Source: Bigelowiella natans CCMP2755
Lineage: Eukaryota; Protista; Cercozoa
DNA length: 64,000 nucleotides
Direction of reading: 5' to 3'
NCBI GenBank assembly: GCA_000320545.1
Contig: ADNK01002524.1
Location: 115,526 to 179,525, forward strand
Shown in pieces: positions 10,240-64,000 of the stretch (its first letter is position 1; every line of letters begins with the position of its first letter). The position numbers were made by a program, and so were the translations under genes. The notes beneath the pieces were generated by a model. That model saw nothing but the letters and a program-made list of their open reading frames with translations. It ran no database searches and had not been told where the DNA came from.

Positions 10240-11530
10240 GGGAGCAGCAACTTAGCATGTGAAGCGGCGGTCCGCAGTGAGTATGCATTTCATGTGCATG
10301 GACACATGATGACAATTTGTAGACATTTTTCCGATGCACGGCACGGCCGTTGATCCTGGCACTGTACGCACATCCGTGCGATGTTTTAAAATTCAAAATC
10401 ATGTTGCCAAATAAATTCCAATTTGCGTGTCGTGCATAAAAAGCTAAGAAATCCATCATGACTGGGCTGGTTCTGTATTATGCCCGTGTGCTTGTTTGCA
10501 ATCACTGTAGCTTTTTCGAAGAAGATAACGCCGTTTAGGCAACGCGTGTGCAATTGTTGCACATGCATAGTTTTGATGCGCAAACTCCTAGAATGTCTAG
10601 ATCTAGAGTTGCAAACGACAAACGGGATGCATCTCATCATCTCCAAAATGCGTGAGCAGTTTGATTCTAGAGATCGCACAAGTTCTGTTTTTAACGATCT
10701 CTGATGTTGCAAATGTCTTCATTTCATTTTGGCAGCTTTACTAGCTAGCTAGCTAGTTGACCGACATGCAATGCAATGCACATGTAGCATCACTGTTTCC
10801 ATTGTCTAGATGTGCATGACTAGCTAGCTAGCTAGATGGGTCTGCATGATGACATGCAAAGCAAACGTTTTGTGCATGTGATGGGCCTAGCTAGATGGGC
10901 CCCTACCTAGCTAGCTAGGACTCTAGCAAGCTAGCTAGTTTGGCGCGAACGATTGCACGTTCAATTTTTTTGACTTGGTGCATGCTGGCATGCTAGCGTG
11001 CTACAGCTAATTAGCTAAGTGTTCAAGCACAGCTAGACAGTTAGAGAGGTGTGCATGCCGGGCTAGCGGGTGGATTTCGAGCGAGATGTGAAGGTTCGGT
11101 AGATCTAGAGGTGTCCACTAGCTAGCTCATTGTTCTAGCTATTCCTAGATTCTAGATGCGCATGACGAAGCTTGCATTGTGCATCGAGCTAGATGGGTCT
11201 CAGATCTGAATACTAGAGCAACCTAGCTAGCTAGCAAGGCAGAAGACACAGCCGCAAATTTGAGATCGATGCACTGCTACTAGCGCACTAGCTAGCTAGC
11301 ACAATTATTAGAATAGCTAGATCATGTAGCATTTTTCGACATCACAATTTAAAAACTCGTACCGCCGCTGAGATGAATTCGATCGCATTTTCATGAGTAC
11401 GCAGCATGGGTATGTCCACATCTAGACATGCATCTCTAGATTTGGCAGGCAGGCTTACGGAGCATGCAAGGTTAGCAGGGCTGGGGTACTACTATGATTG
11501 CATGTGGGAGCACATTGCATCCGGTATGTA
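10240..11530. other. TpA-depleted island A (intergenic; rich in CTAG, CATG and TGCA)
   Basis: Most surviving TA lies in CTAG/CTA/TAG contexts, there are runs such as ctagctagctagctag (~10741, ~10800), and there are no (TA)n microsatellites. Boundaries are approximate. Confidence 0.75.
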
Positions 11531-13419: not shown

Positions 13420-16250
13420 TGTCACCTCCTTGTTGACATTTTCTAGATCCAGCGCATGTTGTTGTTGGTTCAAAGCCCAATTTGCGGTCGTTGGTCGAAG
13501 GCAAATACACAGTACGAGAAGAACAGACGAAACGCTGCAACTCATTCTCCTGAACGAAAGGCAGACAGGCAGAGCCGGTCCCATTGCTCAAATTTGGACA
13601 AATACCAAAAATGTTGCCAATTGTCGTCACGCACGAAACACAGGCGAATTTCACATATTTTAGTCTCAAATGAGCACATTTTTCAGATGAAAGCAGCCAC
13701 GATTCCTTTGGGTAATTTTGCCTGCAATCACATTGGGAAAAGTAGCATGTGAAATGCAAGGGCATTTCATCATTGCGTCGTGAACACATTGGGCAAGCGC
13801 GCGCAAATTGACGACTAACATTCATGTCAGTGATGGAACGCAAAGTTTGTGCTGACCATCCTTGTCATTGTCCTCAGCTTTCTTGGTCATGGGGCCCTTG
13901 CTAGTTGAATCACAAAACACCAACAGGGTGCTGACAAGTCCTCGCAATGATTTTTGCTGAGGCGCTGCTGCGTGTTTGTGCATGCTGACATGCCTCCCAT
14001 GCGGTTCTTGCTCGTGCAGTTTTGCATTGATGCCTCAATTGTTGTTCGTTGCGTTCATTGTTCACGGACAGGATGCAGGCCGCTTTGAGTCCTGACGTGC
14101 GTGCACGTTGACTTTCATTTGTTCCTTCAACGGTTCCAATCGGAAGCGCACCGTGCTGCACACTAGCTAGTGCGTGCCAGCGTGGTGTGTCCATTGTTTG
14201 TCACTTGCACACCCAAACGTCCGCACGTTCATTGACACGGCGTGCGCAGCAGGTGCAACAATGCACTTGTTGTGCACATTGATTTGATGTCCATCATGCC
14301 AGAGTGATGGATCACGTGATTTGTCTGCAGTGCTGCCCCCCCCCAACCACACTGGCACACTCTAGCACTGCCAGACTGCTGGACTGGCATGCGTAGACGT
14401 TCTTCTTTCACCCATTCTGTGGTTCGATGCGACATTCGCTTGACACGTTTGCAATTTGAAAGCTGCAAAGGGGCGTGCTAGCGTGAGTGAGTCAACACGT
14501 TTCGCGACCCTTTTCGCTAGACCACAAGTGAAGCACTGTGTGTTGTTCGCTTTTTGACGTCATTCACTCCGCCACATTCTGGACATTCCGCGCGCCCCCG
14601 CTAGCCCGTCAGCCAGCCGCCAGCCGCCATCAAGCTGAGCTGGTTCGAGTCTCCTGCTTTGCGCACTCGCTAGCTCGTGCAACGTCTGCTGGTCTGCTCT
14701 GTGACATGTCTAGCTGTGCTGACCGAAGTTGACTAGCCTCACTTCAATCAGCACTGGAGCGCACTGTGCGTGCAGTGCGGCAATGACAACTTCGAAACTC
14801 TTGGCCAACAAGTTTCCAGCATTCGTCAGTTGTTGCACCATGCCAGCATGCTGCATGCTGGCATGGCTAGATGGGTCAGTGAACAACTTCATTCGTTGCT
14901 GTGCAACACTAGAACATCAGAATGCAGAAGAAAACAAAGCACTGAAGCGGAGTCTGCCTCCTCCCATGCTTGAAAACAAGCGTCGCAGGTGCGCGTCACA
15001 CGATTGCTTTCTCTTGCCAATTTGCTGCGACTCAAGCAAAAATTGTGCGCCACATGGAAATTGCACAATTTCAGGTTCAGATCAACGTTGGACCGCTCTT
15101 AGCAGCGATTGGAACCGAAGAGCGCAACAATGATGACTTCCAACGGGCTTTCTAGTTTTGTGAATCAGGCTAGCAGGTGCCTTCGACACGTTGTCATGCC
15201 CATGATGGCCAGCTTGATGCATGAACTGTTGAACTTCCATGTCACACACCTCCAGACTAGCAGACCTCACAGACCTTGCACGTGTCGCAAGCGATGCGTG
15301 CAAGCAAACTCGAACGCCAAAACGTCTAGAAGTCACGCTGCTACATCTGCCACATCATCTTGCCATGCTTCACATTCAATTCCCCCATGTGGGATCGGAG
15401 CACCATCCAGTGATCACAGCAAGCTAACGTGCTAGCAACACCTAGAGTTGTGCCGCGCATGCTGGCTGGGAGCTAGGCTAGCACGTGTGGGCATGCAAAC
15501 GATGCATCATTATCATCTGATCATGCCAGTGTTCACGCACCATTGACTTCACTGCACAGCTCCGTCAAACCTGTGACGAATCGCCAGAACATGCATTTGG
15601 AAGCTTTTGCGCGCGATCAAGCGCGTCATGCGTGATGCAATGGACATTGGATTAGCTCGCATTTCTTTGAAATTTTTCGTGCATGTCACATTTGGTCAAA
15701 CACACGCGCAAAAGCATTCAAAATGTGGCAGAGAACAAACGCGCAGCGTGCATCCTCTGCACAACGGGTGTGAATTTTCACACTTTGCGCGCTCACTGAG
15801 GCCTTGAAGCTGGACATTTGGGTCAGTATTTCGGTTATTTTTTGAGGTTTGGCCATCGGACAAGTTCTGATGACTTTTCTTTGACCAACTGCAACTGCCT
15901 GCTGCTTCAAAGCGCTGCACTGTTCACAACCCCGTCGTTACCGGGTTTGACTGAGCTGTGTGTGCACGTTGAAAATGTGAGCCAGTGTCACCTCACGCAG
16001 CATGTGACTGCCCCAGACACATTGCGCGTCAGCACGTCAAAAAATGCTTGAACCATCCAGATCATGTGTCATGCAAGCATCGCACACACGAACATGCACG
16101 CATGCAGCACAGTAGCTAGCTAGCTAGCTATGATCGAAGCAAAATGCAAACTCACACCATGTGTGGTGTGTCAAAATTTTGCATGAATTTTGCATTGTGG
16201 GGCCAGTCTAGCAGTGCTAAGTTGTTACATATATACAGAGATGCATGCGA
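13420..16250. other. TpA-depleted island B, containing degenerate Cys/His-rich reading frames
   Basis: TA is nearly absent outside CTAG. Many overlapping ORFs occur, consistent with loss of TAA/TAG stops, and the translations are Cys/His-rich and Tyr-poor. There is a (GCTA)n run at ~16113-16130. Confidence 0.8.
14363..16219. mobile_element. Possible TIR-bounded element of ~1.85 kb
   Basis: Left end TAGCACTG-CCAGACTG-CTGGACTGGC (14363-14388). The right end GCCAGTCTAGCAGTGCTA (16202-16219) is its inverted complement, lacking one 8-nt unit. Both ends terminate in TA. No transposase is recognisable inside. Confidence 0.3.
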
Positions 16251-38269: not shown

Positions 38270-39060
38270 GCAACAATTTGCAACATGCGTGCGCTGCGCA
38301 ATTCTTTGGACTAAGGTCAAGGCCCTTGTTGTGCGTGCGTGATGATGGTAGTTTTTTTTGTTTTTTTGGGACACCGGAATGCTCTTGCAAGCTGCATGTG
38401 AAAGGATGCTACGCTCGGATGCCGCATGGTCGCACTGATGTTGTCATCGCTTGGACCTCGCGTCTGGCTAGCTAGCTAGGTCAACAATCAAAGTCCACAA
38501 CAGACTGTTGCCAAAGAAATCCTCAACTTTCGCCAGATGTTCAGTCACATGAGGATCGGAGATCACGCTGATTTTTCATGAGCCAGTCTGCCAGCATGAC
38601 TCTAGCGACCAATGCATGATCACTGCTGCAACCGCACCTGTGAACTGTCGATCGAACCTTTGCCATGGAATCCTTTTGTTCATTCATTCACATGACAACC
38701 CGCCATGTGGAGTCATTGGACACAACCAAACACCGCTGAAGCCAGATGAACTCAATGAGAGGGTGGTGAACACCAGAACACAAACAGGGAGGGCGGTCAA
38801 CTGTGACGTGCCAGTCTAGCAGTCTAGCAGTGTGGTTCGTCGTGCACCCTTGCGTGCAGCTTTGAAATCATGCACTCACATTTGGATGTCAGCATGCTGG
38901 CAAGCACGGCGCTCCAGCGCTGCGGCACCTTTTGTCTAGCTTCACATGTTCTGCAATGGCAGTCCAGCGGCCATTCGCACAAGCACTGCAAGTCCAGAAT
39001 TGGCGCGCTGGAAAAACGACGGGGTTTGTGCAATGCGACATCAATTTTTGATGTCGCTCA
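38270..39060. other. TpA-depleted island C
   Basis: TA is scarce outside CTAG. Contains gctagctagctagg at ~38468 and GCCAGTCTAGCAGTCTAGCAGT at 38810. Confidence 0.7.
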
Positions 39061-42689: not shown

Positions 42690-45600
42690 GGCGAATTGTG
42701 TTGACACATCAATTGGACATGTCGCAGATGAAAAGGTTGGCAAGGACGTACGCAATCCTGCTATGTGCATGAAGATGGCAAAGCGAATGTCAAGAAAAGA
42801 TGTGCCTGTAGCATCTGAAAACCAAAAAATTGTGTTTGAGGACAAATTTCATTCAGTACGCATTGCCAAGACACTGATCGACGAAGAGAAAAAGGCGGAA
42901 AAGGTTGAATCTAGTTTTGTTTTGAATCAAAAAAAAATGGGTAAACACATTTGTGTTGATTCATCACACACACACATCTGCCAACACACATTTTCCTTTC
43001 TGGTCGATGCGGCCCCCGTTTGCCTTCCCACGGGGAAACCTGTGGCATCCAAAAAGTTGTCTGACGATGATTTTCATTTTTCAGAAGAGACTTCTTGCGT
43101 CAATGAAGTTCATTCCCGCTCCAGATCAAGTGCCTTTCTTCGTTGGGCGAAAGGATGTGGTCAAACAGGTTCTGCATGAACTCCAAGACACCAGCAAGCA
43201 AGTGCACCTGCTACATGGCTCTGGAGGCATTGGAAAGAGTCAGTTGGCCGTTCGATTGTTCAACTCCCTCATTGAAACCGGTCAACACTCTCACGCGTTT
43301 TGGCTGAATTGCCAATCAACTGAAAAGCTGACGATCAACTACATGCGCATCGCTGAGAAAATTCCAGGCCTGCACGTTGACAAGAAGAACATCAAATCGG
43401 CCATCCAAACCATCAGGGAACGAATCGAGACTGAGCGCTGCCTCCTGGTTCTCGACGACGTCAATGATTGTGGTGCGGTGACCGAATTCTCACCTAGGAA
43501 CAAAGGACACGCAATCCTGACATCAAGAAATTGCACTGATTGGAGTCCAGATGTCAAACCTTGGCGAATTGGGGGACTGGCAGAAGAAGACCTGATGCAG
43601 CTTGCCCATGAATTCGGTCCATCGATGCCGGATCCAAAAGGCGACGATGCGAAGAACTGCATGGAATGTCCAAAAACTGAATTTTCGGGTCACACCGTGA
43701 TCCTAGCGCAATTCTTCAGCTGTTGCAAACAAAGGGGCTGCGAGGTGGCAGATCGCATTGAGGAATTGCGAAAGACAAAACGCAATTGTGACAGAAAAGG
43801 GGAACAAATCCCGCTTGAAAAGTGGCTGGAAAAACTCAACAAGAGCACCTCACACAGCCAAAGCATCGTCGCAGTCGTCGACGAAAGCCTGGCCGCGATC
43901 GAGCGCACCGATCACACTCAGAACCAAGACGCTAGAGCTTCGTGTGTTGACGGCGAGCGCGCACTCGCATTGTTGCGTTCGCTCGCATGTCTGGATCCGA
44001 AAAACATTCCATTGGAGCTGGTTCTGAGGCTCAATGCATCGCACAACCAGGTTGGGGATTGCAAAGAACGTGAAAAAAAAAGTGAGCAGTTGCTCTCTTC
44101 CATCGAGGACGAAGAAGTGCACCGTGCTGAAGATGGTGAAAAAGTGCGCGACGCATTGGCGCATCTAGAGCGCTGTTCTTTGACACAGTGGAGCAAAGAA
44201 ACCAAGCACATGAACATGCACGCTGTCACACAACGCATGGTCAGATGTCTGCGGCCAAAGCCCGACATCAACAAGCTGGTTGAAGCCCTGGTTCGCCATG
44301 GAGGCGACTTGGATGAAGCTCACAACCCCCAGGAAGAATGTGCTGCAGTGCTCCGGCACGGAACCCAGCTCGCAACTGATGGCTTCGAGGCAGAACAAAG
44401 TGGGAACCTAGCAGCTGCTGTGGCACATGCCTGGGCAAACACGTTTGTGTCAAATTGTCACACACACACACACACACATCTGCCAACACACACTTTCCTT
44501 TCTCATCGATGCGGCCCCCGTTTGCCTTCCCACGGGGAAACCTGTGGCATCCAAAAAGTTGTCTGACGATGATTTTCATTTTTCAGAAGAGACTTCTTGC
44601 GTCAATGAAGTTCATTCCCGCTCCAGATCAAGTGCCTTTCTTCGTTGGGCGAAAGGATGTGGTCAAACAGGTTCTGCATGAACTCCAAGACACCAGCAAG
44701 CAAGTGCACCTGCTACATGGCTCTGGAGGCATTGGAAAGAGTCAGTTGGCCGTTCGATTGTTCAACTCCCTCATTGAAACCGGTCAATGCTCTCTCGCGT
44801 TTTGGCTGAATTGCCAATCAACTGAAAAGCTGACGATCAACTGCATGCGCATCGCTGAGAAAATTCCAGGCCTGCACGTTGACAAGAAGAACATCAAATC
44901 GGCCATCCAAACCATCAGGGAACGAATCGAGACTGAGCGCTGCCTCCTGGTTCTCGACGACGTCAATGATTGCAGTGCGGTGACCGAATTCTCACCTAGG
45001 AACAAAGGACACGTGATCCTGACATCCAGAAATTGCACTGATTGGAGTCCAAATGTCAAACCTTGGCGAATTGGGGGACTGGCAGAAGAAGACCTGATGC
45101 AGCTTACCCATGAATTCGGTCCATCGATGCCGGATCCAAAAGGCGACGATGCGAAGAACTGCATGGAACATCCAAAAACTGAATTTTCGGGTCACACCGT
45201 GATCCTAGCGCAATTCTTCAGCTGTTGCAAACAAAGGGGCTGCGAGGTGGCAAATCGCATTGAGGAATTGCGAAAGACAAAACGCAATCATGACAGAAAA
45301 GGGGAACAAATCCCGCTTGAAAAGTGGCTGGAAAAACTCAACAAGAGCACCTCACACAGCCAAAGCATCGTCGCAGTCGTCGACGAAAGCCTGGCCGCGA
45401 TCGAGCGCACCGATCACACTCAGAACCAAGACGCTAGAGCTTCGTGTGTTGACGGCGAGCGCGCACTCGCATTGTTGCGTTCGCTCGCACATCTGGATCC
45501 GAAAAACATTCCATTGGAGCTGGTTCCAAGGCTCAACACATCGCACAACCAGGTTGGGGATTGCAAAGAACGTGAAAAAAAAAATGAGCAGTTGCTCTCT

Positions 45601-46670
45601 TCCATCGAAGAGCTGGTTCCAAGGTTCAATTCATCGCACAACCAGTTTGGGGATTGCAAAGAACAAAAAAAAAAAATGGAGCAGTTGCTCTCTTCCATCG
45701 AGGACGAAGAAGGGCACTGGGCTGAGCGGTTGCTCTCTTTCATCGATGATGAAGAAGTGCACCGCGCTGAAGATGGTGAAAAAGTGCGCGACGCATTGGC
45801 GCATCTAGAGCGCCATTCTTCAATGCAGTGGAGCAAAGAAACCAAGCACATGAACATGCACGCTGTCACACAACGTGCAGTCAGATGTCTGCGGCCAAAG
45901 CCCGACATCAACAAGCTGGTTGAAGCCCTGGTTCGCTGTGGAGGCGACTTGGATGAAGCTCACGACCGCCAGGAAGAATGGGCTGCAGTGCTCCGGCACG
46001 GAACCCAGCTCGCAACTGACAGCTTCGAGGCAAAACACAATTGGAACCTAGCTCGTGCTGTGGGAAATGCCTGCAACGTTGCATGCCTTCATGACAAAGC
46101 ATCAGTGTGGTTCAAGAAGGGTGCAAAAATGATGGATGCTGAAGTTCCTGCACAACCCAGGGAAAAGGCAAAATTGGCTGATGGCTACAACAACATCGGC
46201 GGAGTGTGCAGCAGCATGGGCAAGTACCCGGAGGCACTCGAGGAATGCAAAAAGGCCCTCGACATCGAGTTGGCGGTGCATGGCAATGACAAACCCCATC
46301 CTGATGTGGCTCGTAGCCACAACAACATCGGCACTGTGCACAATGGGATGGGCAAGTACCCGGAGGCACTCGAGGAATTCAAAAAGGCCCTTGACATGTG
46401 ATTGGCGGTGCATGGCAAGGACAAACCCCATCCTCATGTGGCTACTTGCTGTGACAACATCGGCGAAGTGCACAAAAGCATGGGCAAGTACCCGGAGGCA
46501 CTCGAGGAACACAAAAAGGCCCTCGATGTCGAGTTGGCGGTGCACGGCAAGGACAAACCCCATCCTCATGTGGCTACTAGCTACAACAACATCGGCTTCG
46601 TGCACAGAAGCATGGGCAAGTACCCGGAGGCACTCGAGGAATGCAAAAAGGCCCTCGATGTGCGGTTGGC
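42690..46670. other. TpA>TpG/CpA converted domain (island D) inside the NLR-like gene
   Basis: Hand count: 7 TA in 43081-44434 (5 CTAG, 2 CTAC), against 15 TA in 40621-40920 and 13 TA in 46981-47280 of the same gene. Confidence 0.9.
42941..46070 (+). repeat. Tandem duplication of an intron plus NB-ARC exon (copy 1 42941-44434; copy 2 44435-~46070)
   Basis: The copies align directly at an offset of ~1.5 kb. Copy 2 carries extra internal duplications (93-bp period at 45517-45702, plus a 45-bp partial repeat). Confidence 0.95.
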
Positions 46671-46977
46671 GGTGTACGGCAAGGACAAACCTCATCCTAG
46701 TGTGGCTGCTAGCTACAACAACATCGGCAGAGTGTACGGAAGCATGGGCAAGTACCCGGAGGCACTCGAGAAATACAAAAAGGCCCTCGATATGCGGTTG
46801 GCGGTGTACGGCAAGGACAAACCCCATCCTGATGTAGCTACTTGCTACAACAACATCGGCACTGTGTACGATGGCATGGGCAAGTACCCGGAGGCACTCG
46901 AGAAATACAAAAAGGCCCTCGATATGCGGTTGGCGGTGTACGGCAAGGACAAACCCCATCCTCATGTGGCTGCTAGC
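46186..46977 (+). repeat. Six near-identical 132-bp (44-aa) TPR-coding tandem repeats, followed by more divergent TPRs to ~47400
   Basis: Units start at 46186, 46318, 46450, 46582, 46714 and 46846. Consensus YNNIGxVYxxMGKYPEALEKYKKALDMRLAVYGKDKPHPxVAxS. Confidence 0.95.
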
Positions 46978-48235
46978 TATCACGACATTGGCTCAGTGTA
47001 CCAACGACGAGGAGAGAAGGGAGATATCGAAAAGGCGATAGAGCTTTACAAGAAAAGTTTGGATATGAGAAAAAGGATTTTCCTGACAGTCGATGCCAAG
47101 GCGCATCGTCTTGTAGCATCATCCCAACACGATCTTGCGCTCGCATACATGTCACGAGGCGGACAGGGAGATATTCAAAAGGCGATAAGACTTTACGAGA
47201 GTAGTCTGGAAATGAGGAAAAAGATCTTTCTAAAAGGTGACGTGAAGGTGCATCATGAGGTAGCATCATGTCAAACGGTTCTTGCGACCGCGCACTTAAT
47301 GCAAGGATCTAAGGATGATATCGAGAAGGCGATAGAGCTTTTGGAGAAATGTTTGGAGATGGAGGAGGAGATTCGACGAATAGAAAGAGGCAAGGCTGAT
47401 AAGGTAGCAACAATACTTGTTATTATCGCGTTAGCTTATAAAAGGAAACTTGTCCCAGTTTACGAAAAGATTTCATCTCTTCGTAAGCCCAAATTTAACC
47501 AACGCTATGTCAATATGAAGTCGGCTCTGATGCAAAGACTCACCAGGCTGTCATATCATTCGATACTAATGCAATCTGGCATTGGGAACGCAAATCATGA
47601 ATCTCGGATGATCGATACCCTACTCGCAGTGCTCCACTTCAAATTCCACAAAGCAGACCCAAAGGATGTAGCCGTATTCGTGTCCAATTTGAAGTCCCGA
47701 AAGCGGTATCTCGAAACTAAAGGGAGTCATGGCAAGGTTGGTTCACCCCCTCCATTGCCAGCATTACCGGTGGGGATCTTACCACGGGGAACAGAGCAGT
47801 CTCTTTTCTGTCCTAAAATTGCTGGAAACGGCGGAGATGGAAAGAGACTGAGCGGGAACTCGGGAGGTGGAGAACGCAGGACCGGTGTAGGAGCAGTGGA
47901 AGGAAGTGTTCTTGTGGCGTTGGAAAAAGGGGGGGGGGGTCGGAGTGAGGGTGACAGGAAGCAGAGCAGGCAAAGAGCGCGTAAAAAAAGAAACGGAAAG
48001 AAGCGAAATGGGAAGAAACGAAAATGAATTTGATGAAGAAATTGACTATGTGAGCCAGCATCGAAGCATCAGCCCAGTGCCACTCTTGCACGTAATTAAA
48101 GTGTCAACAAATGTAGCCTAGTGCTGCATCATACTACTGTGTTGTGCTGCTGTAGTCCTATACTCATTACATTATATTATTTTACTTAAACTATATATTA
48201 GGGGGATTGGGGACATTTAATTTATATATTTATAT

Positions 48236-48529: not shown

Positions 48530-49880
48530 GAATGAATGTGCATCCTGCAGATTGTGCGATGCATGCATCGCATTAGCAAGGTTCATGAATGTTAGCTGCC
48601 TGGCTAGGTAGCTAGCTAGCAACGATGTCACATGAACACGCATGACAACATGCAGGGGGCACATGCATGCACTAGGCAAATGCAGGCAAAGCATTCATTT
48701 GGGATGTTGGCACATCAAATTCTCATGATCATGCGAGTTCATTGTTTGCGAGCTGCACATCCCAAAACATGTTCATGCTCATGCACAGATAAATTTAGCT
48801 TTTGGCCAATGCCAGAATGGCACAATCTAGCAATGATTGACCATGCGATGCTAGCTAGGTAGCATGCTGCCACAGCACGTGAGGTCAATTTGCGTCGAAA
48901 ATGATGTGCGTCACCAGCTAGCCTGGGAAATTTTTTACATGATTTACAAGTAAATCTGGAAATGGTGGAGTTCAAAATGACATGGAAATTCATCTTCATT
49001 TGATTTGCACAACAACGTCATTGACAAGTTGATGAGCATTTGTTAAGCATTCTTTTGATTACCATCCCGACAGCTTTGAGCGTGCATGCAAGCTAGCAAG
49101 TGCAGTTTCTGCAATGCGATTAATGTTGCGACCGTTTGTAGCAGTTCCACTTAGCGCGCACAACTAGACAACGCGCATGCGTGTGTTGTGCTGCACATGC
49201 TAGCATGCACGCCTGCTAGCGAGAAGCTCCAGAGCTAGCAAAGCTGTGGGTCGATGTAGCTGACTACTGAGAATGACAAAAAAAGAGATGCAATGCTCGC
49301 TAGCTCGTGCTAGCGTGGTCTGCACGATGCACGATGGCGTCGTGCATGCGCTTGTACTACATGGACTATTGAACATTGCGTGCATCCACCACTCTCTCTA
49401 ACACTTGCGTGTGCACGTGAACGTGCGACAGGCACGGCGCAACTTTGTGAGCATGCAGCATGTCACACGGTGAACAAAGACACAACTGTGATCACAAATC
49501 CACTTTGCGAATCCAAAAATGCAAAATCTGGCACATCCATCCCCAACATCGCGATGCACTAATCACAAACATTCACGTGGATCCTCACTTGTTGAGAGTC
49601 TTGCAACACAAACGGTCCGACAAGTCTTCTTCATTTCGTCAACCGCAAATATGGTAATGCAAAAGAGACTTTCCATCACTCACATTCTCCAAGTTCCGAG
49701 ATGAAATGTGCAACTTCTTGAATATGCACACCCAGCGCGTCACATCAACCAACACCCCTTCTTTTCGAACACGCGGTGCCATCTTCCACCAGCTAGCACA
49801 TCTCAATGTCAGCACCATCCGCTCATTGCTGGAGGATGGATTGCCCCCAAGACATCATTTCTTCGACCTAGAACAGGAGA
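48530..49880. other. TpA-depleted island E
   Basis: Rich in CATG, TGCA and CTAG, with TA scarce otherwise; ggctaggtagctagctagc at ~48602. The signal fades towards ~50300. Confidence 0.7.
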
Positions 49881-50429
49881 ATAGAGGACAAAATCAAACG
49901 TACAAAACTTTAAAAAACAAATCAAAATGAACCCCAAGGAAAAAACACAATTTCGATGCTCTGCTCTCACGCACGCTCCTTTTCCTCGTCGCATTGTTGT
50001 CTCTGTTGCAGTGCACAGTACCGTTGGCATAGTTCCGTTAGCTTTTGTTGTGGTGTCGTGGCCCGCCTTTGCCCAATCTGAAGAGGAAGATACAAATGCA
50101 AACGATGGGAAATAAGCTTTCAAAAAAGAGGAACATGATGTGCACAACTACTACGCACTCAGGGATGAATAAAGCGAAAAAGATGATTAAGTTGGTACTG
50201 GTCGGGGAAAACCAAACGCTTTTACATTTTGTTGAATCGTCCATGTTAAACCCACAAAACACACTAAACTACTGCGCAAAACCTGCAAAACTCATTTGCG
50301 AACTTTGGCCAACAACAGTGGCGCTTTCAGCGCCTGGGTAGGTGGGGGGGGGGGGGGGGGTATCAACAAGGAAGCAAACGCGTAAACACGTAAACAAGCA
50401 GCGAAATACTACTAAACAACACACGCTCA

Positions 50430-52524: not shown

Positions 52525-54702
52525 TATATAAAAATATATTTTATAGAATAAATATGTGTATACGGGAGATTTATCGAGAAACGACTTCAATAGCGAAATG
52601 GAAATGCCGTGAAAAAACTAAGACACGAAATCGCTTTACTCCCATGAGTACGTTAAGCACAAATAGAGGATATAGACGATAGGTACTACCAACAGAGGAA
52701 TTAACTCGAGAAAAGGGGGGGAAGAGGGGAATGCGGGGAAAGGAAGGGGGGGGGGGGGGACGAGCGATAGATGACGCTATGCTATTCAAATCCATTACTT
52801 GATTGCTTCTGAAACAACCCGATCTGATGGCAGAAGTTTCCGTCAAACAGAGTGAATCTCGGCTGGTCGCCATTCCTCCCATCGTTGGTGCCGTTGACCG
52901 TCCTCCCCCACAGCGCCACGCCGCTCATCCCCAGCGAGTAGAACTCGTTGCGGGTGATGCTCGTGTTGCGATTGTAGCCCGAGAGGAACACCGCGTGGGA
53001 ATCCATCTTCGTGAATAGGTTCCCGCTGATTTCGACGCCTTTCGTGCCGTCGAGGTAGATGGCGCCGAGGCGCTGCAGAGCCCAATCCCCCCCCGAAGGC
53101 ACGCCGTGAGCTTCCATGTAGGTAGGCCTCGTCGCCCTGAACTCGATGTTCTTGATGGAAATCTCTTCCGCGGGGGCGTCCATGTCGCCGCGGATCTCGA
53201 TCATCTGCGCGGCGGTGGGCACGACGATCTCAGCCGGGGGGGTGGGGGGAGACGGCGCGGCTGGCGAGGACGAGCCGTTGTAGTAGAAGTGCAGCTGGCC
53301 GGTGGCGGCGTCAAAGAAGAACTCGTTTGGGGCATCGAGCTCCTCCAGCACGTTGTCCACGTACCACTCCCAGGCGGTTTCGGAGCCCTCCCCCCCCTGG
53401 TGGCCCCCCTTGGAGAAGACGAATTCGTCGGAGTTGGTGTGCGGCGCGTAGCCCGAGAAGGCCTCGTCCTGGTCCATCGGGTTCCAGAACTCCACGGCGG
53501 AGGCGTAGCACTGCCCGCGCCACGCCTCATCCGCAAACTGCGTCGAGTGCCATGTGAAAACGACGAAGGCCGTCGCGCTGTCGTTGACCGCCTTCCAGCA
53601 GCCGTCCATGGAGTCGAACTCCCCGAGGTAGGTGACCGTGTCCGTGGAGGCCTTCGGCGCGGGGACCAGGCCGGCGACGTTGTTGGCGTTGTCGGCGATC
53701 GTCCACGTGTCGACGCGCGCGCCGGGGTTGACGGCCCCGACCTCAAACATCCAGGAGAACCAGTGCCCCGAGCGCCACGTGTGGATCTCCGCGCCCACGA
53801 CGCTTCCGGCGGCGTACTTGGGGTAGTTGGGCAGGTTCTTTGAGCCGATGATGCTGCTCGGGGAGCGCGCGTGCATCTCGGGGAGCTGCCTCGCGGTGTA
53901 GAAGTCCTTCGAGCACCACGGGCTCTGCGGGGGGTCGTAGCGCGAGCATGCGCCGCCATAGCCCATCGTATAGTTCTGGAACATCCCGTGCCAGGAATCG
54001 TCCACCGGAATGGTGCTCGTTTCGCTGGGGCCGCAGAAGTCGTTCGGGTCGCACTCCTTCCCCTCGTAGACGGGCATGCCCCACTGCGTGGCGTCTTTGC
54101 TGACCCAGCCCTGCGGGAAGAGGTCGGTCTCGGGATTGGCGTTCGGGTAGCGCGCGCGTGTCGCACGGCGGCCGGCGACTTGCAGCGCCTTGATGCCGTT
54201 TGGGAGCGACGCGAGCTGCTCGTCGCTCAGCTGAGCGACGAAGATGCCATCCTTGTCGCCTCGAGGGGCCCATTGAACTGTGAGGGGTACTCCGCCGCTG
54301 ATGACAGCGTTGTCCTCTCCCTCGATGGAGAGGCCGGAGTCTTGCGAGGTCAGCACTACCGGTGTTAAGACGTGGTGAGTACCTGCGAGAAGAACGATGC
54401 GCTGTATGCCGAATGCGCGATGCATATCGACGGCCTTTGCAAGTGTTTTCAGAGGGCTGTCGCGGCTCCCCTTCCCGTCGTCATCGCCATTGACAGGGTC
54501 AACGAAGAGCGCGGCCTTGTCATCTTCCGCGTACGGGATTGGTGCAGTCATGCGAGCCATCTCTCTTTTGTCGGAAGGGAAGGTTTCATTGCAAAGGGCG
54601 GAGAGCTCCAGCGCATCCCAGAGTGCACGCAGCTTTGCGGTGTCCTTCGTGGATGAGGGGGGTAGGGTTGAATATTGAGCTTATCGAAGAGCTCCCACTC
54701 TT

Positions 54703-54950: not shown

Positions 54951-56147
54951 GTGAGAAGGAGATTGTAAGTTGTAGAAGAAGCTATAAGCTATCAAACGAT
55001 ACAAAAGACTAGACTTAAATCTCTAACAGCTTGGAAAAAACATATAATGACGCGCTTTGACCCTGCGAAGGCTCATGCTGTGCGTATAATACAGCCTCTC
55101 CTTTTTATAAAAATGAAACTTCTGAAGCTACTGCTAGCGGTTGTGATTTTATCAACATCAATTGCTCCGCTGCCTACCCAAGTGGCCGTGAAGAAGAGAT
55201 CTTTTCCATCAACGTCGCACCAGTGCTGCGGTTAAGGGAGAAGAACTAATGAGACCAGCTTAAGCGTGAAATCACAAGTTGATTCAAAGAGTTATGAAGG
55301 AACGTTGGAGAGGAGGGCTAAAAACTTTTCGAAGGAACACCTTAGCGTCAGCAAGTTTGCGAGAGATGCCACCAGACATAGTGGACTGAGACGACCTGCA
55401 AACGAGTGTGCACGCGGTTCTCTTCAGGATTTTAAAGGTTTACTATAGAGCTCTCTCTCGATTGATTCGCCAACTACGTCGAGGCTTACACGGACACAAA
55501 TATTTCGAAATTCACATTCGTGCTATCCCCCACGTACAGCGACAAGGGGTTGGGGGGAGGGATGAGGAAATGGCATCGAACCCATCAGCGCCATCCTAAT
55601 GAGCGCTTTGGCTGGGAAATGTGGCAGGCCTGAACCTGTGACAAGGCATGATCTCCTCCTGCGACAATCATATTTCCCTGTCGTTCTACAAAAATGTGGT
55701 TATTCGCAAATACCTTAAAAAATAACGGCCTGGAGTACTAGTACCCTGAATGATATATGAGGAAAAGGCCTTCTATTTATCCATCTGCGACATTTATTTA
55801 TGGAAATATTCCATCAATGTAGATTTTAAGATACAGTGTCTCAGAATTATATGTCACCATTGATAAAATGTACGTTAGTTTGTAATCATTTTCTCTTATT
55901 TTCATTATCGCATACGGAAACATTCTGTTTTTCTTTGTCGGAAGAAATACATTTGGATCTGAGACCCAATTCATGAAGCTCCCAACTCTGTCTCGGAAGA
56001 TGTTTCCAAATCGATAGCACGGAAGACTTGAGTCTATGCACATAGAGTAGGACAGTTCCTCAGATGAAATGTTGGCCAGTTAGGAGCAATATGCTTTCTG
56101 ATTGCTGCATTTCCTGGATCTGAATAGCCAATGGAAACAAGCAGATA

Positions 56148-57740
56148 ATGAAGCAAGAAGATCGAGACAGTAGCCCACACAACCACGAGAGGAAAAAGGA
56201 GCAGACATTACATATGAAGAGACCTTCTGAACCAATGAAATTCTCCCTCAAGTATAACCCGACAACGCTTAAGGCTATGGAATATAGGATTCTCTCGTGT
56301 GCTCGTCCGCATATGCGGGCTTTCCATCTTGCTTGGTCCTCATTTCTGGTTGCATTTATAGCTTGGTTCTCCTTTGCACCGTTGGGTCCAGCAATAAAGG
56401 AAACGCTAGGTCTTACAAAAAAGGACCTTCTATGGGCTAATATCGCCTCGGTGTTGCCAACTCTCTTTGCAAGGTTTGCAGTGGGACCTGTTATGGATCA
56501 CATAGGGCCGAGAAAAAGTCAGGCTTTTATCCTTATGTTCGCTGCGATTCCAACATTTTTTGCGGGATTGATCCAGGGCATCGTGGGTCTTTGTATTATT
56601 CGCGGTCTCGTAGGGGTTGCTGGAGCAGCTTTCGTCGGATGCCAGTTTTGGTGTACTTTGATGTTCGAGAAGGAGATTGCCGGAACAGTCAACGCCACAG
56701 CAGGAGGGTGGGGCAATCTGGGCGGAGGGCTCACACAGGCACTCATGGTTGGTATCTTTGCCATGAACACATCTTCACCAAGTTGTGACCAGGAATGCGG
56801 GTGGCGCAATGCCTTTTTCATTCCTGCATTTGCACTGGTACTCTTTTCTGTGTCGATATTGCTTCTCGCGGACGATTGTCCCCAGGGAGGGTATGTACCC
56901 CCAGTCCAAACTATGACTACATCATCCATCATAATGGAACACGAGGAGCAGGATAATATTCAACCTGGCAAAGGCCAAAGAAAGAAAAAGCGCCAAACAG
57001 CACATATTAGCGATGTTGTGAGGAATTCCCAAGTCTGGGCTCTCGCCCTTCAGTATGCATGCAGCTTTGGAATAGAACTACATGTGAATAATACGATTGC
57101 ATTTTACTATTGGGATCGGTTTGGGTTAGCAATTACCGCAGCAGGACTTATAGCGTCGCTATTCGGTTTAACAAATCTCTTCGCACGTGCATGGGGTGGG
57201 ATGATATCTGACTTTTGTTATCGGCACTGGGGACTGATAGGACGCAAATATAGCCTTGTTTGTCTCACATGCTCCCAAGGTGTTCTTCTTATCGTATTTT
57301 CAAGAATGACTACTCTAGAAGCATCCATCGGCTTGATGGTGATATTCTCGATATTTGTTCAAGGAACTGAAGGATCTACTTTCGGGATCGTGCCGTACGT
57401 AGACCCACTCAATAATGGCGGGGTGTGCGGCTTCGTCAGTGCCGGCGGTAACATTGGAGCTGTGGTGTGGGGGTTAATGTTCCTTTTGACCTCAAGTTAC
57501 AGCGACGGTTACATGATTTTAGGGATCATCGTGCTCTTCACCGGTCTTCTGGGCATCCTTACCATTAGAATATATGATACATCACATAGCGGAAAGAAAG
57601 GCTTTCATGGAAATGATGTAAGTAACAATAACTATGATGGAGCGAACAGCTTACCGGAGATAGAAGAACGGAATAAGTGCTCTACATTAGAATTAACCAG
57701 TATTTCTATGGACCACAAGAATGGCGGCGTCCCGAGATAA
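56148..57740 (+). CDS. NRT2: High-affinity nitrate transporter (NRT2 / nitrate-nitrite porter family), intronless
   Basis: 530-aa single ORF with ARPHMRAFHLAWSSFLVAFIAWFS, GPVMDHIGPRK, the NNP signature AGTVNATAGGWGNLGGG, FGLTNLFARAWGGMISD and GSTFGIVPYV. Confidence 0.95.
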   Translation: MKQEDRDSSPHNHERKKEQTLHMKRPSEPMKFSLKYNPTTLKAMEYRILSCARPHMRAFHLAWSSFLVAFIAWFSFAPLGPAIKETLGLTKKDLLWANIASVLPTLFARFAVGPVMDHIGPRKSQAFILMFAAIPTFFAGLIQGIVGLCIIRGLVGVAGAAFVGCQFWCTLMFEKEIAGTVNATAGGWGNLGGGLTQALMVGIFAMNTSSPSCDQECGWRNAFFIPAFALVLFSVSILLLADDCPQGGYVPPVQTMTTSSIIMEHEEQDNIQPGKGQRKKKRQTAHISDVVRNSQVWALALQYACSFGIELHVNNTIAFYYWDRFGLAITAAGLIASLFGLTNLFARAWGGMISDFCYRHWGLIGRKYSLVCLTCSQGVLLIVFSRMTTLEASIGLMVIFSIFVQGTEGSTFGIVPYVDPLNNGGVCGFVSAGGNIGAVVWGLMFLLTSSYSDGYMILGIIVLFTGLLGILTIRIYDTSHSGKKGFHGNDVSNNNYDGANSLPEIEERNKCSTLELTSISMDHKNGGVPR

Positions 57741-57937
57741 AAGTTTTTGTTGTGTTTGGCACAGCAAGAAGCTCCACATATAATGCACAGACAATAGACA
57801 CGGAACAATAGCAGAGACTCCCTGTCCTCCACTAAAACGCATCGTGCCATAAAGCAATAGCATTGCAATGAATATTCTGTACTGAATCGGAAATTATGGC
57901 TTACACGTTACTTGTATTACAACAAAGTTTGTCACGC

Positions 57938-57955
57938 AAAAAAAAAAAAAAAAAA
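57938..57955 (+). repeat. A18 tract about 200 nt downstream of the NRT2 stop
   Basis: Seen directly: gtcacgc(A)18gatgt. Confidence 0.9.
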
Positions 57956-57959
57956 GATG

Positions 57960-58830
57960 TGCGAGCGAAACAGATGAATTGAGTAGCCAAGACACACCAT
58001 GTGCTAACCCCCCCTCCCCCCGGCCCCCCTCTCCCAAATGGCATGCACACACAAAAATTTGTAAATTGGATCATGGTATGAGTGCATCGCCAGTTTAGCA
58101 GTCTAGCAGTGCTCTCGGATTTGTTCTGAAACGTCGTGCAGCTAGCGCATCGTTTGATCGCACATTGTCATGTTGAAAGCAACTTCCACTTGACAGAGTC
58201 TCCTCTCAGGCTCATAGTTTTTTTTTCCATTTGTCGCCACAGCTTGCTGCTAGCTGGACAGTGTTGTTGCTAGGTTGGCTCAGAGCGAACGGCGGGATGC
58301 AAAATGCGCTGGTGCGTGATGGCGTGTGCGTGCCAATTGATTTTGCAATGCCGGCTGCTCGTCGCAAAACAGCGTGACCGTGTCTAGTGTGTCTTTCATC
58401 GACGAATTCTTGTCCCTGCGTCAACTCTCAATTATGTGGCTTGCTGAACTTGCAATCATGCACGCTGGCATGTGAGAGCGCTAGCTAGCTAGCTAGAGCA
58501 TGCGCGCACACACCTAGACATTTGACCACAATGAAAGTCTAAATCATTCTGATTTTGAACATGCGAAAGCATTTGTTGTAGCACCAGCTAGCCAGTTAAA
58601 CCAAAGCCTGCCTGCTAGCATGGCAAATCCTCATTCGGACATTCCGATCATCTGCATATGTTTGTGTGGCATCAACCGGCCTCGTCATCACCTTGGCGCT
58701 TCCCATCAAACACGGTTCCGCATGATTCAACTTGGCAATTCGACGGTGGTGCAGGATAATGCATGCATGTTGGTTTGTTGGAACGGCACACGCAATGCAG
58801 CCAGTTGAGCATTTTTGTTTAATTTTGCGA
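57960..58830. other. TpA-depleted island F
   Basis: TA is scarce outside CTAG. Contains gctagctagctagctagag at ~58480 and GCCAGTTTAGCAGTCTAGCAGTGCT at 58089. Confidence 0.7.
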
Positions 58831-59212: not shown

Positions 59213-59534
59213 TTCTCTCAGAAAATAAAGTGACATATTAAGTTTTTAATATATGCTGTGCTCGTTTCTCTCCATTATATATAGTATATATATATATATA
59301 TATATATATACTATAATGAGGAAACATAACACGTGTCCGTGCACGCGCGCGTGTGGTGTATGCATGTGTGTGTGGGGGGAAGGGGGGGGGTGTATAAGAT
59401 ATTGGTGTTGCGAAGAAAGCTTGTTTGTCGATCATTCGTGCATAAAATATCGTAGGACGACCGCACGCTGAAGCCCATAGATGATCCGAATCAAGTTTCC
59501 CCTAAACATCACAATCGACATAAGACACACAAAT

Positions 59535-59581
<47 letters not shown>

Positions 59582-60033
59582 CTTACAACTGCAGATGATT
59601 CGGTAATAACTATATGCGGTATGTTAGGCCGAAAAAGATCCGCGTTATACCGCAGGGTAATACGGCGGGTAGTAATACCAAGCAAATCTTCCAATTCTCT
59701 GGTATTTCGATCTCGACTGCATTCTCCTCTGGTTGGACAACGCTCACTGTCGCCGTACATCCTACTTAAAGATAATTATTTACACTTTTTGTCTATATCA
59801 TTACGCAAAGCATATCGTTGTCTGTGCGTGCGTGTGTTTGTGTGCGTGTTCGCGTGTTGGCGTGTGTTTGCGCCTTTGTGCGGCCAACGTGTCCATGGGT
59901 CACCCGCAATGCTCGACGAATCGTCTACATTTGGAGAACACGAAGAAGCGTGAAACGGGTCTTGGCTGCTGCCCTCGAAATACTCCCGCAACGTAGTTTT
60001 CCCTTTCCTTTCATTTGTCGTACGTAAGCTGGA

Positions 60034-63609: not shown

Positions 63610-63659
<50 letters not shown>

Positions 63660-63684
<25 letters not shown>

Positions 63685-63907
63685 TATAATGAGGAAACAT
63701 AACACGTGTCCGTGCACGCGCGCGTGTGGTGTATGCATGTGTGTGTGGGGGGAAGGGGGGGGGTGTATAAGATATTGGTGTTGCGAAGAAAGCTTGTTTG
63801 TCGATCATTCGTGCATAAAATATCGTAGGACGACCGCACGCTGAAGCCCATAGATGATCCGAATCAAGTTTCCCCTAAACATCACAATCGACATAAGACA
63901 CACAAAT

Positions 63908-63954
<47 letters not shown>

Positions 63955-64000
63955 CTTACAACTGCAGATGATTCGGTAATAACTATATGCGGTATGTTAG
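63660..64000 (+). repeat. Direct repeat, copy 2 of 59288-59627
   Basis: Identical by eye apart from the length of the upstream (TA)n run. Confidence 0.9.

Follow-up and report, generated by a model that had tools for sequence, protein, structure and literature searches.

Tandem NB-ARC exon copies in Bigelowiella natans point to hypermutation of TpA to TpG or CpA after duplication

Why should two tandem copies of one exon differ from each other mainly at dinucleotides where a TG in either copy faces a CA in its counterpart? The question is raised by a predicted CHAT/NB-ARC/TPR gene of Bigelowiella natans CCMP2755, located in a 64,000-nt stretch of contig ADNK01002524.1 (positions 115,526 to 179,525; this whole stretch is the window below, and all coordinates refer to it). 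A repeat search of the window identifies a tandem duplication at this locus, with the block 42965–44430 found again at 44467–46073 and a start-to-start spacing of 1502 bp. The first-pass annotation had proposed that an ancestral TA was independently converted in the two copies, and had noted no described process with such a spectrum. Here, we conclude that the stretch from approximately 42.7 to 46.66 kb is very probably one of the TpA-targeted hypermutation domains of B. natans, in which duplication came first and was followed by independent conversion of the copies.

The copies were compared by global alignment of 42930–44445 with 44430–46090, the core of which comprises 1431 aligned columns. 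All fifteen TG/CA doublets listed in the first-pass annotation for the exon have been reproduced (copy-1 positions 43286, 43471, 43512, 43667, 43787, 43988, 44025, 44035, 44174, 44181, 44184, 44236, 44238, 44297, and 44380), as well as both sites with TA in one copy and TG in the other (43340/41 and 43603/04), and a sixteenth doublet is observed at 42957, in the duplicated intron. The copies mismatch in 45 of the 1431 columns, and these mismatches form 17 adjacent pairs, 15 of them TG versus CA, while 1.37 adjacent pairs are expected and the maximum over 10,000 permutations is 8. Other differing columns number about 13 (approximately 0.9%), close to the dozen estimated earlier. At three positions in a CAA/CAG context (43550, 43751, 44393) the copies differ as A versus G, which may hint at a weaker activity on ApA.

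The same region is strongly depleted in TpA. Exactly seven TA are left in exon copy 1, the number given in the first-pass annotation, five of them in CTAG and two in CTAC. The observed-to-expected ratio (O/E) of TpA equals 0.08, 0.07, and 0.07 in the 1-kb intervals covering 43001–46000, and 0.81 in the whole window. The GC content of the window is 0.444; the value published for B. natans is 0.4487 (Mettrop et al., 2026).

The ancestral state was assessed with three outgroups: paralogous proteins, the homologous transcript L002, and unconverted TPR units in the same exon. In the protein alignment with paralogues from the library search, the family has Tyr at five doublets where the copies have His and Cys (Q-H/C-S, ME-C/H-P, LA-C/H-LDP, ER-C/H-S, and VR-H/C-GGD). 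At a sixth family-Tyr site copy 1 has TA and copy 2, TG (IN-Y/C-M, 43340), and two further family-Tyr positions are altered identically in both copies; there are also positions with family Val or Ile where the copies show Ala/Val or Met/Ala. At the DNA level, the TA dinucleotides of L002 within the TpA-depleted island correspond in the window to CA in 12 cases, to TG in nine, and to TA in four, while in the flanking CHAT exons they correspond to TA in ten cases and to CA and TG in two cases each. Similarly, TPR units r5–r6 contain TAC (Tyr) and ATA/ATG codons where units r1–r4 show TGC, CAC, GTG, and CAT, and the unconverted units (46675–47002) document the ancestral TA from within the same exon. 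Hence, TA or Tyr in three independent outgroups supports the earlier claim of an ancestral TA at the doublets, with one transition per copy to TG or CA.

The same doublets could formally have arisen by decay of a methylated CG, deaminated to TG and to CA in the respective copies. Per-site parsimony is equal for this explanation, again one transition per copy, and two single differences between the copies, at 44125 (TG/CG) and 44324 (CA/CG), do involve CG. Still, CpG decay is refuted, because the three references carry TA or Tyr at the doublet sites: at these codons Tyr (TAY), not Arg (CGY), is found in the paralogue family, and TA is carried both by the DNA outgroup and by the TPR units that escaped conversion. 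Moreover, no CpG deficit is observed, with O/E of 0.96 in the whole window and 0.74–0.98 inside the island, where many CpGs are intact. CG in outgroup paralogs, named in the first-pass annotation as the finding that would overturn it, is thus excluded, and we consider the probability of this explanation to be negligible.

At sites with TA in the outgroup, the outcomes in the two copies agree seven times and disagree four times. This 7:4 ratio is compatible with 1:1 and does not fit conversion before duplication; therefore, the copies appear to have been converted independently, after the duplication. Given 15 differing sites, about 15 hidden sites with the same outcome would be expected, that is, about 30 converted sites per copy. 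Only two non-CTAG TA survive in each copy, and approximately 94% of convertible TA per copy have been converted, compared to approximately 0.9% of other columns differing between the copies. Conversion is near saturation in both copies, and the corresponding excess of the TpA rate would be several-hundred-fold, as a rough lower bound coming from site counts rather than from a direct rate.

The view that no described process has this spectrum is out of date. Mettrop et al. (2026; bioRxiv 10.64898/2026.01.13.699255, April 2026 version) report TpA to TpG/CpA hypermutation in a mutation-accumulation experiment in B. natans itself. Out of 302 nuclear point mutations, 231 map to two regions, one of an integrated giant virus and one of a virophage, and all of these but one are A to G or T to C; by our own tally of Table S2 of that preprint, 226 of the 231 are located at TpA. 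The rate in these regions is about 6e-7 per site per generation, versus 3.5e-10 elsewhere, an approximately 1000-fold difference, and a subset of mutations was confirmed by Sanger sequencing. [quoted passage not shown] The main target, 186 kb long, is single copy. Many host-like Pfam domains are present among the TpA-depleted CDS, with CHAT listed once; NB-ARC and TPR are not mentioned there. Our literature search for Bigelowiella with NB-ARC yielded nothing useful, and PMC11804724 contains no T-to-C spectrum.

The locus shows two features of the published process. A:T to G:C transitions on TpA giving TpG or CpA are seen in 15–16 doublets with TA in the outgroups. A rate far above the background is seen indirectly, from the comparison of converted TA with other differing columns.

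The sequence of events may be reconstructed as follows. First, the NB-ARC exon was duplicated in tandem and in frame, together with a part of the upstream intron, and both copies were then converted independently, near to completion. At each 5'-TA-3' step an A:T pair would be replaced by G:C, a strike at the top-strand A giving TG and a strike at the bottom-strand A giving CA. Either strike would destroy the target, so that each site would end as exactly one of TG and CA. TG would then face CA at about half of the converted sites, the rest being hidden by the shared outcome.

The underlying chemistry would be adenine deamination by an ADAT2-like enzyme, as Mettrop et al. (2026) propose. T to C at TpA complements A to G at TpA, and by sequence alone the two are inseparable. 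Oxidised thymines are mutagenic, and DNA polymerase eta (Pol eta) prefers the WA motif. Hence one could consider oxidation or modification of the T of TpA (5-hydroxymethyluracil or 5-formyluracil, produced by enzymes of the TET/JBP type), which mispairs with G, or error-prone resynthesis of the Pol eta type; the A/G differences in the CAA/CAG context mentioned above faintly suggest a broader WA motif. On the other hand, a literature search for Bigelowiella with thymine or adenine modifications found no thymine modification in this alga, synthesis of the Pol eta type normally adds transversions to the spectrum, but A:T to G:C at TpA makes up 226 of the 231 de novo changes, and an ADAT2-like candidate has been found (Mettrop et al., 2026). 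We regard such other chemistry as possible, though less likely than not.

The first-pass annotation had also raised the possibility of a base-calling effect. In this reading, the DNA would contain TA with a modified base, which a long-read base-caller turns into CA or TG according to the strand. Such an artefact would also produce the two outcomes symmetrically by strand, and its occurrence could be limited to epigenetic domains. Still, the same Tyr to His/Cys conversions and TA depletion are present in paralogue cDNA contigs from MMETSP, which we take to be Illumina RNA-seq, and this excludes the effect. In contig L005, TA O/E is 0.07–0.23 over 901–1722, and the surviving TA are found mostly in the CTA/TAG contexts (CTAG, CTAC, GTAG, TTAG). 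Each conserved Tyr of the L005 TPR units is replaced by His or Cys, and at TA positions of the unconverted unit r5 this contig has CA in 14 cases, TG in nine, and TA in two. Moreover, identical local context gives unlike outcomes in the two copies, and outcomes alternate within 2–3 nt (44181/44184, 44236/44238), which fits neither context-driven nor strand-majority miscalling. The de novo mutations of the preprint come from Illumina data, with a subset Sanger-confirmed (Mettrop et al., 2026). Finally, the neighboring intronless MFS transporter gene (55981–57943) is identical in 1963 of 1963 nt to a JGI-hosted MMETSP transcript contig; therefore, the assembly is accurate at this gene and a same-strain transcript assembly exists. 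Taken with these data, a base-calling origin is very improbable.

Two related candidates were rejected. RNA editing does not account for the pattern, as the mix of Tyr to His and Tyr to Cys requires changes on both strands, and a modified thymine of the dinoflagellate or kinetoplastid type, miscalled by nanopore sequencing, was dropped on the MMETSP cDNA evidence. The 3' parts of the expressed paralogues (L002:3001–3580, L006:2701–3125, and L005:591–1722, all from other MMETSP samples) are partly converted, with the reading frames broken there, which suggests that these paralogues are transcribed, decaying NLR-like genes. The MFS gene (L001, L007) is expressed as well, and its protein variants across MMETSP samples have 100, 99.8, 98, and 94% identity, the last three in sister samples, indicating several strains or alleles.

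The domain of conversion has definable edges, listed with the other features in Table 1. On the upstream side, TA is retained in the window up to 42679, and from 42753 on, sites where L002 has TA read CA or TG here (42753, 42770, 42837, 42843, 42872, 42875). On the downstream side, all TPR units past 46675 keep TA; this edge falls inside an otherwise homogeneous array of 132-nt repeats and is sharp, within approximately 15 bp. Three more TpA-depleted, TG/CA-enriched islands are present in the window, at 13601–16130, 38401–39000, and 49401–50000, with TA O/E of 0.13–0.23. None of them is repeated elsewhere in the window, and most TA left in them belong to CTAG. A Pfam search with open reading frames (ORFs) of the islands at 13.6–16.1, 38.4–40.0, and 49.4–50.3 kb produced no match.

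These islands bear on what marks a domain. The comparison with repeat-induced point mutation (RIP) made in the first-pass annotation implies that duplication triggers the process. In such a case, the 1.5-kb tandem duplication itself would be recognized, and hypermutation would leak a few hundred base pairs into the flanks. Indeed, the single duplication of more than 1 kb in the window lies inside the island at 42.7–46.66 kb, which extends beyond it by approximately 250 and 590 bp, resembling the leakage of RIP, and conversion is later than duplication. On the contrary, the 186-kb target of the preprint is single copy (Mettrop et al., 2026) and the island at 13.6–16.1 kb has no copy in the window, while a 352-bp repeat (59276/63650; 99.7% identity) is rich in TA and has escaped conversion, as have the 132-bp TPR repeats past 46,675. 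The implied trigger is thus unsupported, and we consider it unlikely. Rather than duplication as such, it is probably a guide or a silent state of the chromatin that marks the hypermutated domain; a silent-domain or guided mechanism agrees with the lack of transcripts from the locus, although this is weak evidence.

A further feature of the islands is the sparing of CTAG. In the four islands of the window taken together, CTAG accounts for 42 of the 75 remaining TA; outside them, for 160 of 3924 TA (p = 2e-36, odds ratio 30). Its density in the islands is 2.07 times that outside, while every other NTAN tetranucleotide is down to 0.02–0.24. CTAG is immune, and the CTA and TAG half-sites are partly protected. 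Some context dependence is also visible among de novo mutations: in our hand tally of Table S2, the strand-normalized 5' neighbor of the mutated T is A in 67 cases, T in 67, G in 52, and C in 20, and TAG is under-represented, with 3 of 91 A to G events (Mettrop et al., 2026). This few-fold disfavoring of 5' C is insufficient for full survival of CTAG, or for its enrichment. Short (CTAG)n runs are seen at 10741–11292, 16116–16124, 38468–38476, 48612, 48851, and 58481–58489, several of which lie close to or at the edge of an island.

Several observations weigh against assigning the locus to the published process. The approximately 2-fold enrichment of CTAG in islands goes beyond sparing and is unexplained by immunity alone. 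At the P-loop lead-in, both copies have CAT (His; 43209–43217 and 44711–44719), compared to Cys (TGY) throughout the family; TG contrasts with CA at a site lacking TA in every outgroup, and a TA intermediate would be needed. The preprint stresses foreign DNA as the target (Mettrop et al., 2026), whereas an NLR-like gene of host type is hit here. Rho(TpA) is 0.07–0.08 in all three windows scored, passing the TpA threshold of the preprint, while Rho(CpA+TpG), for which its window threshold is ≥1.52, equals 1.32, 1.52, and 1.37, so that one of the three windows passes (two of four at a 500-bp offset); the published cluster scan may have missed this locus. Finally, no near-identical transcript of the exact locus was found with copy 2 or with the first 270 aa of copy 1, nor with the TPR ORF, a search swamped by generic TPR proteins, and the reality of the change at the DNA level at this locus would rest on the paralogues, the preprint, and the internal logic of the pattern. 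Still, we hold a TpA-targeted hypermutation domain to be the best reading of the whole.

The process might not be aimed at foreign DNA as such, being instead a domain-guided DNA editing that also erodes the organism's own silenced or duplicated immune-receptor-like genes, with the complete, approximately 2-fold enriched CTAG immunity reflecting a sequence-specific protecting mark or a recognition rule of the enzyme. We put this forward as speculative and rather doubtful. If true, it would open a direct way to the identity of the editor and of what sets the base-pair-sharp edges.

Table 1. Features of the duplicated NB-ARC locus and of the TpA-depleted domain (window coordinates).
Feature	Position	Strand	Evidence and remarks
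Upstream edge of TpA-depleted domain	42690..42750		~215–275 bp ahead of duplicated block
Intron ahead of NB-ARC exon copy 1	42941..43084	+	GT donor 42941, AG 43083–84
NB-ARC exon copy 1	43085..44434	+	1350 nt, in frame; Pfam NB-ARC E 1.8e-10
Intron duplicate	44435..44586	+	donor GC, not GT; columns 42942/44436 of copy alignment
NB-ARC copy 2	44587..46073	+	runs into TPR-coding part without intron; Pfam NB-ARC E 5e-11
Converted TPR units r1–r3 and first 90 nt of r4	46074..46660	+	unit alignment, translation
In-frame TGA within TPR unit r2	46399..46401	+	translation; ORF break
Downstream edge	46661..46674		last converted site 46659/60; first retained non-CTAG TA 46675
Unconverted TPR units (rest of r4, r5, r6)	46675..47002	+	TAC Tyr codons where r1–r4 have TGC/CAC

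Pfam domains found at the locus are CHAT upstream, NB-ARC in both copies, and TPR_10/TPR_12 downstream, with no viral or transposon domain among the Pfam matches. The intron ahead of copy 1 is fixed by homologous transcripts, as the spliced L006 skips it and the unspliced L002 keeps it. The start of this intron travelled within the duplicated unit, giving copy 1 a donor of its own; in the duplicate the donor has changed from GTAAAC to GCAAAC, that is, a TA to CA change. Copy 2 contains extra segments at 45586–45678 and 45706–45750, built of local repeats (families D4 and D5). In the converted TPR units the conserved Tyr codons now encode His or Cys. By its predicted coding sequence the gene is NLR-like with two NB-ARC domains, and because of the in-frame TGA it appears to be truncated, decaying, or a pseudogene.

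Elsewhere in the window, the 1-kb stretch 53001–54000 has 65.5% GC and is compositionally foreign to its surroundings. A 592-aa ORF in this GC-rich stretch (52782–54560, minus strand) has a weak Beta_helix match alone, and its exact protein (52785–54560) is not on record by exact look-up. The TA-rich, unconverted 352-bp direct repeat with 99.7% identity occupies 59276–59627 and 63650–64000, where it is cut by the window end, and may represent the ends of a young mobile element.

New at this locus are the host-type target, the near-saturating conversion after duplication, the sparing of CTAG, and the sharp downstream edge at 46,660/46,675. Heritable, strand-symmetric hypermutation of TpA to TpG/CpA in chosen domains is among the strangest eukaryotic mutational phenomena reported, and the locus may serve as a natural experiment, with two initially identical copies recording independent runs of the process. 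The copies show that each TA was struck once, on a random strand, with saturation reached hundreds of times faster than ordinary divergence, and that the process stopped within approximately 15 bp inside a homogeneous repeat array and never touched CTAG. These features constrain the enzyme and the targeting signal, and indicate that host genes, not viral inserts alone, are affected.

Compared to known systems, the locus is closest to the one described by Mettrop et al. (2026), sharing with it A:T to G:C changes almost exclusively at TpA, on both strands, in kb-scale domains with TpA depletion and CpA+TpG enrichment. The two differ in the target, a host-type CHAT/NB-ARC/TPR gene here and a viral insert there, and in the degree of conversion, with TpA O/E of 0.07 (saturated) here and Rho of 0.45 in the nucleocytoplasmic large DNA virus (NCLDV) region of the preprint. 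CTAG immunity, an edge sharp to 15 bp, and timing after duplication are all seen here and are absent from the preprint. CpG decay has the same products, TG and CA, is likewise strand-symmetric, and needs a single transition per event, but here the ancestral dinucleotide is TA rather than CG and the window has no CpG deficit.

RIP in Neurospora and other fungi is similar in being a dinucleotide-specific transition hypermutation on both strands with kb-scale ruin and leakage into the flanks, and here a duplication was struck. The direction is opposite, as had been stated in the first-pass annotation: RIP produces C:G to T:A changes, mainly at CpA, creating TpA, whereas here TpA is destroyed (O/E 0.07) and TG/CA are enriched. 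RIP further depends on duplication and on a sexual cycle; for the TpA process, single-copy targets exist (Mettrop et al., 2026). The A-to-I deaminases (ADAR, ADAT2/3, TadA, and TadA-derived base editors) also cause A to be read as G and prefer a 5' U or T, but the process considered here acts on heritable nuclear DNA. A 3' G is favoured by ADAR, in contrast to the events in B. natans DNA, where TAG is under-represented (3 of 91 A to G events) and CTAG is immune.

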